A program made the position numbers and the translations under genes. Shown here piece after piece: positions 42,208-44,971 of a DNA stretch of 64,000 nt. The stretch covers positions 967,531 to 1,031,530 of the forward strand of contig JAHDYR010000007.1 of the NCBI GenBank assembly GCA_019828565.1, read 5' to 3'. The stretch is from Carpediemonas membranifera BICM (taxonomy: Eukaryota > Protista > Fornicata). Under the pieces are notes generated by a model. That model did no database searches. It was not told the DNA's origin and saw only the letters and a program-made list of their open reading frames with translations. Position 1 is the first letter of the stretch, and each line of letters opens with the position of its first letter.

Positions 42208-44971
42208 AAGTACAGGGTCATCCTAGAGCTAAGCGACACGTCAGCATGGTCCATCAGCCGCTTCATGGAGGAGGCTAGGGACATCCTCAGGCTTCAGGCA
42301 CCGGAGGCCCCGGCCATATGGCAGGCAGCATGGAACAAGTCAGGGATCTACCTGAAGGGCAGAACCAATATCCTGGGCGAAGGGGAGGAGACCCCCCTTA
42401 GCAACGAGCCGCCGTTCCGGAAGGTGAGGCTGGAAGTGCTCAAGGCCACCTCGGTCCGCAGCAATAGGGACGAACATGCCGATCTGGACAGGTCGTCCGC
42501 TAGCACGGTCATCGACGGAGACGAGGAGCAACATGTCAAGGACAAGGAGGAACGACGCCAGCAGGCCACCATGCCCGGCAGAAGAAGCCTCGACGACAGC
42601 CTCCTGGAAGTGAACAAGGACATGGTCGGGGCCAACCAAGGCAAGATCGACCAGGACGAGGAGGTCGACTCAAACAAGGTCAGCAGCCAGCCGCCGAGGA
42701 TGCCTAGAAAGGACAAGGAGAAACGACTGGTGATCGGAGCCATCGACTTCGAGTGCGCAGACCCTGGCGTCAAGAAGGCAGGGATCCCTGCCATCCCGGT
42801 TGAGGGCGGGATCGTACTCTTTGACCTCAGCACTGGGGACATTCTTGGACACGGGCATGGCCTGTATTACCAGGACATACCGGCAGCAAGCATGGACCAA
42901 GCGAGGTACACGGCATGGGCAGTGACGGGGCTGCCGCCGGCCACCTTCGTGGAGGTCGGGACGGGGCGGCCGCCGATCGAGTATGAGAAGCACATACATA
43001 CTTTCAGGGACTGGGCCAACCGCCTGGCGGCTCAGCTGGCAAGGATCGAAAGGTCGGAGGGTTGGAAGATAATCATGTATGCAAAGGGGTGGAGATGGAA
43101 AGCTTCCTCCTCACGAACCCCACAAATGGACTGGAGCAAGGAACCAGGGAATTCTTCCAAGCTAGGCTGGTGGACGAGAAGAAGCTACCAGAGATCCTGG
43201 AGAACAACGGCAAGGAGGAGGCTGGCCAAAACCTCAGGGACAACCTCGACAAGGCCAACTACCTGGAAGCAGTAACAACATGGTCAAATGGATGGCAGAA
43301 CAGGAGCGAGCCCAAGGGAGTCTGTCCGTACCACAGACACACCGCGGGTTGCTACCACTGTGGGTTGGCGGATACAGTAGTCTTCACAGCCAGGATCAGG
43401 GCCCTATGCAAGGAGAGGATGAGCACCCCAGACGTCTACCACTACATGGGTAAGGCACTCGACAAGACCATGGAAGCAGTCGGGAAGGCGGAGCCGGGCA
43501 TGGATATCATGGGAGGCCCGGAATTCGCGACAAGGAGGGACACCTTTGAGATCTTCGGCACGTACCCGATCGGGGACGCAAGGGACGTCAGCAGGGAAGT
43601 CGGCGACAGGATCCTCGTAGTCCCGGACAACGGACACCGCTTCGGCATCGGCTTCGGGTTCGGGGAGGTTCTGTTGGGCATGAAGGGCATCTTACTGGCC
43701 CCCTCACAATCATGGACAACGAAGGTGTACTGGAGAGAAGCCCGCTATGGACCATCATGGAAAGAGCCACGGCTAACCAGCTCCGCATGGTACGCGTCAG
43801 GAAGGGCCTAGGGGCAGCAAGGGAGGAGGACATCATAACCATGGCCATGCTATACGAGTGGTGGCCCTCGAAGGAGGCTACGGCTCATCAAGGAGTCTGG
43901 GGCTGCGACGACCTAGCAGAGAGCCTCAGGGACTATGAGAAGGTCATAGTCAACGTCAAGGCCCCCAGGAACAGGGGTAGGATCACCCTAGGGGCGAGCT
44001 TCATCCCGAGAGACTGGGGCATGGTCAGGGTCAGCGAGGCTGGGACCATCCTAAGCCGCATGCGCAAGGAAGGGGCCAGACTAGTCTCGGCAGCTATCCC
44101 GGACGAGCCCAGAGCCAACACAGTCAATGTCCCAGGCATCACGTATGTCCCCACCATCGACGGAAAGTCCGAACAGCCATACCAAAGTAGGTTCTTCGAC
44201 AACGGCCTGGAGGAAAAGGCGAGGCGGATTAGCACCAGGATGGTGGGCAGGCACTTCGGCCAGGACGCGGATCAAGGACATCACGACCAGCATGGAGACA
44301 GGGAAGAGGACAGAAGGGTAGGACACGGAGCCGGCGGTAGAGCTGGTGTCAGAGCTGACGACAGAACCGGCGACAGAGCTGGTAACATGAACAGGACCTC
44401 GGATCGTAACCACGGAGGAGACGACAGGGAGAGACAGGACAACACGGGAACGCAGATGAGAGGCTCGTTCAGCGGGAACACCTGGGCCGGTAGAGGCTCA
44501 GAGGGAGGCATGGACAACAGCAAGGATCACTCTTCCTCCACGACGCTCAAGCGCAAGGAGGGCAGCACGAGTAGGATCATGGACTCGGACAGCGGAAAGA
44601 GAAGCAGGCACGAAGAGGACATGGACTGGGAGTCTGGAAGCAGACAGGCAACCGGCATGGACTCGGAGAAGCTGCGGCTCCGAAAGCAGTTGGCAGAGGC
44701 GCAACAAGAGATCTCAGCGCTCAAGGCTGCCCGACTCATGCAAGAGCAAGGCCACGGAAGGTTGGTGCTCTCCGGCGTCGCGACTAAGCCCAGCAAGGAG
44801 AAGCCCACGATCCCCCGGCACAAGCACAAGAAGGCTAAGAAGGCCAAGCAGATCTCACCCATGGACCTGATGACCCAGTTCATCACGGTAATGCAGAGTC
44901 TACAAGGACAGCAAGTGAGTCAGGCCGAGGACAGCTGCAGCGGCAGTGGGGAGTCCACGGAGGAGGAGTAA
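42208..44971 (+). CDS. LINE ORF1, C-terminal part with Maelstrom-like DEDDh/ECHC domain and coiled coil (two homopolymer frameshifts)
   Basis: IDFE, PVEGGIVLFDL, VTGL, MYAKG-VEME, CPYH..YHCGLAD; frame shifts at a G run (~43088) and a C run (~43700). Confidence 0.75.

Follow-up and report, generated by a model that had tools for sequence, protein, structure and literature searches.

A probable Maelstrom-type DEDDh nuclease domain in ORF1 of LINE retrotransposons from Carpediemonas membranifera

Introduction

Host genes for Maelstrom (MAEL) are present in animals, Entamoeba, and kinetoplastids (PMC2628886). The Entamoeba protein, which carries DEDD catalytic residues together with an ECHC set, is an active exoribonuclease that degrades single-stranded RNA (ssRNA), and animal MAEL has lost DEDD and binds ssRNA without cutting it (PMC4408791). 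In the Bombyx protein the zinc ligands are E137, C290, H293, and C302; strand 1 carries D122, and R306 replaces the last Asp (PMC4408791). Two general statements in a first-pass annotation of the locus described here need qualification. Its portrayal of Maelstrom as a transposon silencer applies to animal MAEL, in which the nuclease site is lost, and the papers cited herein give no such role to protist MAEL. It also took ECHC for a MAEL-specific zinc site, which it is not, since the nucleoprotein (NP) of Lassa virus has both ECHC and DEDD (PMC4408791, PMC7968707). Two proteins with DEDD plus ECHC have been characterized, Entamoeba MAEL and Lassa NP, and both have exoribonuclease activity (PMC4408791); the ExoN domain of arenavirus NP helps to suppress innate immune signaling (PMC7968707).

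Among mobile elements, the nearest precedents for the domain reported below are the DEDDy ORF3s of rotifers (LTR and Athena elements) and the esterase ORF1s of LINEs (PMC5408684). The ORF3s of bdelloid Juno/Vesta LTR and Athena/Terminon elements are likewise DEDD exonucleases borne by retroelements, with a DEED variant and, in some, a Cys-His-Cys motif; unlike the domain here, they are DEDDy (RNase D-like) and occupy a separate ORF3 in LTR and Penelope-like elements (PMC5408684). The authors of that study remarked that DEDDy exonucleases were previously unreported in retrotransposons (PMC5408684). In the esterase-type ORF1 of CR1, L2, and RTEX, an enzyme is located in the gag-like ORF1 of an APE-type LINE, as here, although that enzyme is an SGNH hydrolase and not a nuclease (PMC5408684).

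Results

Within the window (the whole 64,000-nucleotide stretch of C. membranifera DNA that was analyzed), positions 21796-48404 of the + strand constitute a full-length APE-type LINE with a (TTTC)n tail, flanked by a 15-bp target-site duplication (TSD). Its features, with the basis of each in parentheses, are:

21781-21795, + strand: LINE TSD, 5' copy (15-mer found only here and at 48405)
21796-22394, + strand: LINE 5' end and 5' UTR (73-75% identity to the 5' ends in sisters L013 and L006)
22395-23008, + strand: ORF1 N-terminal part (tblastn and alignment of relatives; no Pfam or PDB match; an upstream in-frame ATG lies at 22269)
23009-42207, no strand assigned: 19.2-kb DNA transposon inside ORF1 (75-bp terminal inverted repeats; 2-bp duplication, AA)
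42210-42720, + strand: ORF1 resumed, completing the N-terminal domain and continuing into a low-complexity, acidic linker (tblastn, alignment)
42721-43089, + strand: MAEL-type domain, first half (motifs; fold taken from intact relatives)
43086-43089, + strand: one-base frameshift in a G-run (tblastn of intact relatives)
43090-43440, + strand: MAEL-type domain, second half (motifs)
43441-44218, + strand: conserved post-nuclease ORF1 domain, fold not recognized (alignment; G-x-K-G-I-L-L, W-P, and F-I-P-R-[DE]-W-G motifs)
44219-44971, + strand: ORF1 tail, charged and of low complexity, including a short stretch that resembles a coiled coil (stop codon 44969-44971)
45303-46421, + strand: ORF2 N-terminus, APE-type endonuclease (PF14529, E 3.8e-7)
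46350-47744, + strand: rearranged ORF2 (RT absent from the window copy; sisters L002, L005, and L013 carry RVT_1)
47745-48404, + strand: LINE 3' UTR (at its end, ATAAAT followed by a (TTTC)n-type tail)
48405-48419, + strand: LINE TSD, 3' copy (same 15-mer as 21781-21795)

The element displayed the characteristics of a LINE: ORF1 followed by ORF2, an APE in the window with RT in sister elements and at 62771-63917, TSDs, a simple-repeat 3' tail, and a 5'-truncated copy. The TSDs were 15 bp at three insertions (the window LINE, the truncated copy at 14368-14654, and a full-length sister in L013), and all four element 3' ends examined had (TTTC)n or T-rich tails, with no poly(A). ORF2 of the window LINE contained a 318-bp duplication (46350-46667 = 47427-47744) and, at about 46668-47474, a remnant of the thumb and Cys/His C-terminus. 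The best PDB match of the RT was L1 ORF2p, a weak one (E 4.5e-5), and a domain scan that included sister elements detected no RNase H domain in ORF2. With its 19-kb insertion and RT deletion, the window copy is dead as assembled; other genome copies are 99-100% identical to parts of it, which is consistent with recent activity or duplication.

More broadly, mobile elements (Ty3/Gypsy, LINE, and DNA transposons) are nested in the window region alongside ordinary host genes. The truncated copy at 14368-14654 (- strand) is a 0.29-kb piece of the 3' end of the window LINE, inside a Gypsy pol gene, with a (TTTC)n tail and 15-bp duplication. Within 60194-63917, about 4.7 units of a 548-bp tandem array (99.7% identical) precede an RT fragment that covers 62771-63917 and belongs to the same LINE group. 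DIRS-like elements, with RT/RNase H, a methyltransferase-like tail, and a tyrosine-recombinase-like ORF, adjoin several LINE copies (L002:12100-20100, L005:1000-3600, L006:2860-6400). Tandem RT elements at L001:1721-10134 represent another non-LTR type, with a C-terminal Cys/His region and a tail resembling a restriction-like nuclease, and a 199-bp piece of them is identical to window 59632-59830. Finally, a fragment of a host CAF1/PARN-family ribonuclease (PF04857) at 4511-5296 is unrelated to the LINE domain.

ORF1 of the window LINE, of about 1,125-1,167 aa, is split by the DNA transposon and by two one-base homopolymer frameshifts. The first-pass annotation had joined 22269-23008 to 42210-44971 as an ORF of roughly 1,160 aa. 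The join stands, given that a natural protein from another copy, J8273_1798 (P0004), spans the empty site and reads ...EQEDGKYRVIL... uninterrupted across 23008|42210; wrong joining of the two parts was rejected on this continuity. The start is probably further in: relatives begin at the equivalent of Met-22395, so that ORF1 is probably about 1,125 aa and not 1,167 aa long. A TA duplication for the transposon was also rejected, because it would create a stop at the empty site, where the natural protein shows AA. Using tblastn with intact relatives, we placed the frameshift expected near 43088 at 43086-43089, and a second in or near a C-run at about 43699-43712, within the post-nuclease domain. 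Near-identical repeats of this assembly (GCA_019828565.1) differ in indels almost wholly by single homopolymer bases, so both frameshifts may be long-read errors.

We searched the window ORF1 as separate pieces and built profiles and folds from intact natural relatives. The N-terminal domain (22395-23008 plus 42210-42480) is conserved among lineages and had no match in Pfam or PDB searches. The post-nuclease domain (43441-44218) is common to all lineages that retain the region; it had no Pfam or PDB match, nor did P0013:265-510 match PHROG or NCBIfam. Domain scans of ORF1 revealed neither an RRM nor a zinc knuckle.

The 19.2-kb transposon itself (23009-42207) has CAT...ATG ends and carries cargo genes, specifically a protein kinase (28543-29871, - strand), a weak SET domain (35627-36280, - strand), and a Cys-rich ORF (24230-25480, - strand). 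The transposase may be encoded by an 807-aa ORF (25525-27945, + strand) that lacks a Pfam match. Elsewhere, a copy with 99.3% identity has inserted into a second copy of the same LINE; window 53463-54896 and L001:11062-20843 belong with these observations.

The motifs noted in the first pass were all present in the reported order, from IDFE to the Cys/His block (42742-43373). One frame contains IDFE (42742-42753), PVEGG (42796-42810), HGLYY (42856-42870), VTGL (42922-42933), and YAKG (43078-43089), and the other contains EME (43092-43100) and the C-P-Y-H...Y-H-C-G-L-A-D block (43323-43373). The first half thus supplies the ExoI Asp (42745) and Glu (42751), the putative zinc-ligand Glu (42802), and the His of H-x-L-Y (42856), and the second supplies the ExoII Glu (43098), the other putative zinc ligands, Cys (43323), His (43332), and Cys (43359), and the ExoIII His (43356) and Asp (43371). 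A chance motif was rejected: C-x-[YFW]-H-x(5,17)-H-C-[AG]-[LM]-x-D has a single match in the window translated in six frames, and 0 of 2000 residue shuffles gave this C-terminal pattern.

Searching exhaustively with HMMER, we used the first half of the domain as query and recovered seven genuine relatives, all belonging to C. membranifera or assembly GCA_002919055.1 (GC about 61%), and searches of contigs added further ones; P0011 and P0012 were removed as repeat-driven chance matches. Six of the resulting lineages belong to C. membranifera and three to GCA_002919055.1; the C-terminal Cys/His block is preserved in seven. Domain-bearing relatives are P0013, P0006, L011, and L013 in C. membranifera and P0007, P0009, and L010 in GCA_002919055.1, with uninterrupted, full ORF1s in P0007 (1129 aa) and P0009 (1233 aa). 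An APE-type ORF2 lies downstream of the domain in L003, L004, L005, L006, L010, and L013, and the fragmentary lineages P0008 and P0010 have other ORF1 regions in common with the family. Hence the assignment of the domain to a LINE ORF1 was borne out by the TSD-bounded element, its APE ORF2, and recurrence in sister families of both assemblies, where intact LINE copies carry the domain ahead of an APE-type ORF2; the suspicion that other copies lack it did not hold. At the P0008 locus (L011:8400-8932), a divergent lineage seems to lack the zinc/ExoIII block, through deletion or an assembly break, and to pass from just after ExoII into the later W-P and DWG motifs. No relative of the domain was found in viral or prokaryotic contigs, a word-based search with the C-terminal half gave no result, and one with the family profile returned Carpediemonas proteins only and no host MAEL. 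A tree of the N-terminal half did not resolve the branching, and the APE tree separates just the two assemblies.

Amino-acid identity over the domain was 31-59%, with pS of 0.54-0.84 versus pN of 0.25-0.53 and synonymous sites at or near saturation. Invariant where covered were the ExoI D-x-E, the strand-2 Glu, A-K-G-x-x-M-E, C-P-[YF]-H, and H-C-x-L-x-D, the sole exception being D to Y in P0006, for which a 99.5%-identical sibling retains D. In the alignment of relatives the DEDHD catalytic set is retained (D-x-E, ExoII Glu, and H-x4-D), and E-C-H-C with the C-x2-H-x8-C spacing of Bombyx is found in every lineage whose C-terminal half survives (7/7). As for the EHHCHC set described by Zhang et al. 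(PMC2628886), the first His is kept in most aligned rows, and the second is kept in P0008, P0009, and P0010 and is Thr or Ser in others, including the window family (Thr). Because these residues are invariant at 31-59% identity with near-saturated synonymous sites, the domain is an old part of ORF1 that has been under purifying selection. A one-off passenger capture was rejected, as divergent lineages show pN below pS over the domain.

For P0013:18-275, the AlphaFold (AF2) model (model 1) had a pLDDT of 71.6, a pTM of 0.76, and RNase H-like strand order; model 2, from P0007, was weaker (pLDDT 60.5), and confidence was low in the zinc (Cys/His loop) region (pLDDT 53-65 in model 1, <50 in model 2). 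The leading Foldseek matches of both models were all DEDD nucleases (prob 0.92-1.0), and the predicted structures give the domain an RNase H-like DEDDh fold. By E-value, model 1 matched TREX2, Orn, REXO2, and RNase T first (from 3.7e-4) and Drosophila MAEL at rank 43 (2.3e-3), although among its top 50 this MAEL chain (4ybg) had the highest query TM-score (0.46, the next being 0.40) and the lowest rmsd. With model 2, seven of the top 50 matches were MAEL chains. The best of them ranked 6 by E-value, below generic DEDDh enzymes, and Bombyx MAEL chains had the three highest query TM-scores in that set (0.47, 0.43, and 0.42). The MAEL TM-scores are all <0.5, and a viral protein without a name equals the query TM-score of 0.46 (0.46/0.57). 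Arenavirus NP was absent from the top 50 in three Foldseek searches. Thus the scenario raised against the first-pass reading, in which generic DnaQ exonucleases without ECHC rank best, is seen for E-values, led by generic DEDDh enzymes, and not for TM-scores, led by MAEL. At the sequence level, Pfam Maelstrom (PF13017) gave no match at E up to 10; PDB sequence and profile searches with the nuclease domain, solved MAEL chains included, gave none at E up to 10, and PHROG and NCBIfam scans of ORF1 pieces and intact domains gave none.

Several features nonetheless match MAEL: the C-x2-H-x8-C-x3-D spacing, H-x-L/F-x-Y after strand 3, K-G-x-x-M-[DE], and a strand-2 Glu that lies 16-19 residues past the first Asp (15 in Bombyx). 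Protist Maelstrom (Entamoeba EHI_192630 and trypanosomatids) resembles the LINE domain in its DEDDh and ECHC sets, order, spacing, and fold (PMC2628886, PMC4408791). Unlike it, the LINE domain is within an ORF1 of 1,100-1,200 aa between two unrecognized domains, has Glu at ExoII, and is below HMM detection. Entamoeba MAEL has Y-D-F-E, I-E-I-G, and Y-H-K-L-L-Y, with a C-x-Y-H-x6-Y-H-C-A-L-x-D block as in the LINE domain, and trypanosome MAELs have N-K-G-x-L-M-D at ExoII versus A-K-G-x-x-M-E here (PMC2628886 supplement). That alignment was compared by eye in a machine-read form, in which the shaded conserved letters were missing and were placed from its consensus line. The Glu variant of ExoII is also known from nidoviral and rotifer enzymes (PMC7968707, PMC5408684). 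Animal Maelstrom (Bombyx 5AF0 and 9NHS, Drosophila 4YBG) gave the best TM-scores in both PDB searches, and the spacing of C290-H293-C302-R306 in Bombyx equals C-x2-H-x8-C-x3-D of the LINE domain; however, animal MAEL has no DEDD, carries an HMG box, and acts in piRNA silencing, whereas the LINE domain keeps the catalytic residues and has no detected HMG box. Arenavirus ExoN (Lassa NP) shares ECHC and DEDD in the RNA-packaging protein of a genetic parasite but differs in its viral context and had no Foldseek top-50 match. Its His-to-Cys spacer is also much longer than that of the LINE domain.

Discussion

We consider it very likely that the ORF1 domain is MAEL-type and closest in motif spacing to protist Maelstrom. 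The protist-type reading of the first-pass annotation was upheld for the motif set and the DEDDh fold and not for a match to Pfam PF13017, and we do not claim formal MAEL membership because that search was negative. Motif spacing is a stronger argument than the fold scores. A generic DEDDh exonuclease that gained a Cys/His cluster independently, making the Maelstrom likeness convergent, would be compatible with the lack of a MAEL link in HMM searches, with the E-value order favoring Orn, TREX, and RNase T, and with the Cys-His-Cys motif that rotifer DEDDy ORFs also have (PMC5408684). We regard it as unlikely, given that the C-H-C-D spacing is exact, the strand-2 Glu, H-x-L/F-x-Y, and K-G-x-x-M-[DE] match MAELs, and MAEL has the top TM-scores for two independent models.

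On balance, we favor, somewhat above even confidence, the reading that the middle domain of ORF1p is a DEDDh nuclease of the MAEL/arenavirus-ExoN type, acting as an RNP-bound 3'-5' exoribonuclease for which removal of duplex or antisense RNA is likelier than a decoy role. Because all catalytic positions are retained (ExoII as Glu), the domain is probably an active Mg/Mn-dependent 3'-5' exoribonuclease. LINE ORF1p coats element RNA, and the nuclease would accordingly travel with that RNA as part of the ORF1p ribonucleoprotein. Its substrates there could be the exposed 3' ends of RNAs, whether duplex, antisense, or small, by which the element would otherwise be silenced. The arenavirus NP nuclease has duplex-RNA specificity, and since this NP is the nearest functional parallel, counter-silencing removal of such RNAs may be ranked first among roles, short of a majority. 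The narrower proposal, that the domain is a catalytically active true MAEL suppressing RNA silencing from within the ORF1p particle, is doubtful.

Among other roles, a lesser but tangible possibility is that the active nuclease works on the element's own RNA, trimming poly(A) or read-through to expose (UUUC)n for target-primed reverse transcription, or maturing the RNP. The (TTTC)n or T-rich, never poly(A), ends of the four elements agree with this, but short tandem repeats also terminate the elements of many LINE clades that encode no nuclease, and a self-bound exonuclease requires a stop signal, of which none was identified. Degradation of ssRNA by Entamoeba MAEL (PMC4408791) and the 3'-end processing suggested for rotifer DEDDy ORFs (PMC5408684) also speak for action on element RNA. 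Rather improbable is a function at integration, where the nuclease would remove the RNA strand or 3' DNA flaps in place of RNase H or of repair nucleases from a host whose DNA-repair machinery is reduced. Characterized ECHC-plus-DEDD enzymes are RNases (PMC4408791) and the domain sits in ORF1, unfused to RT, despite the lack of a detected RNase H domain in ORF2, the activity on DNA of many top Foldseek matches (TREX, RNase T, ExoI), and the absence of several DNA-processing complexes from Carpediemonas (PMC8516963). Similarly improbable is a non-catalytic use along the lines of animal Maelstrom, with the domain either binding RNA or serving as a decoy to a host silencing complex. Animal MAEL does bind ssRNA without cutting it (PMC4408791), and an ORF1 with no detectable RRM or zinc knuckle needs another RNA-binding module; yet all five catalytic positions, lost in animal MAELs, are kept over nine divergent lineages where covered, and our HMMER and family-profile searches retrieved no host MAEL. 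The captured anti-silencing decoy proposed in the first pass is, as a pure decoy, disfavored by these near-invariant residues.

The domain was probably acquired once, before the LINE lineages diverged. Animals, Entamoeba, and kinetoplastids have MAEL as a host gene and the LINE form was found in two assemblies only, so a single capture by these LINEs is a simpler account than one in which MAEL arose in mobile elements; no donor was found. Nothing supported the first-pass hint at a mobile-element origin, and mobile elements as the reservoir from which host MAELs were drawn seem very improbable. Its remark that it knew of no LINE ORF1 with MAEL agreed with our literature search, which found no MAEL domain in any transposon; Repbase and subscription journals were outside its scope, and an earlier record is possible.

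The narrow distribution, in Carpediemonas and assembly GCA_002919055.1, restricts generality. Within it, these elements represent a new ORF1 type for non-LTR retrotransposons and a third home of the ECHC-plus-DEDDh nuclease, beyond host genes and the arenavirus nucleoprotein. In both parasites, LINE and arenavirus, the domain is part of the protein that packages the RNA genome. Moreover, an element in which selection has kept such a nuclease intact provides a small test system whose readout, retrotransposition, can be counted. If silencing is countered, LINEs would encode an enzymatic suppressor that is kin to a silencing factor of the host, and LINEs, like arenaviruses, would use a MAEL-type nuclease against their host.
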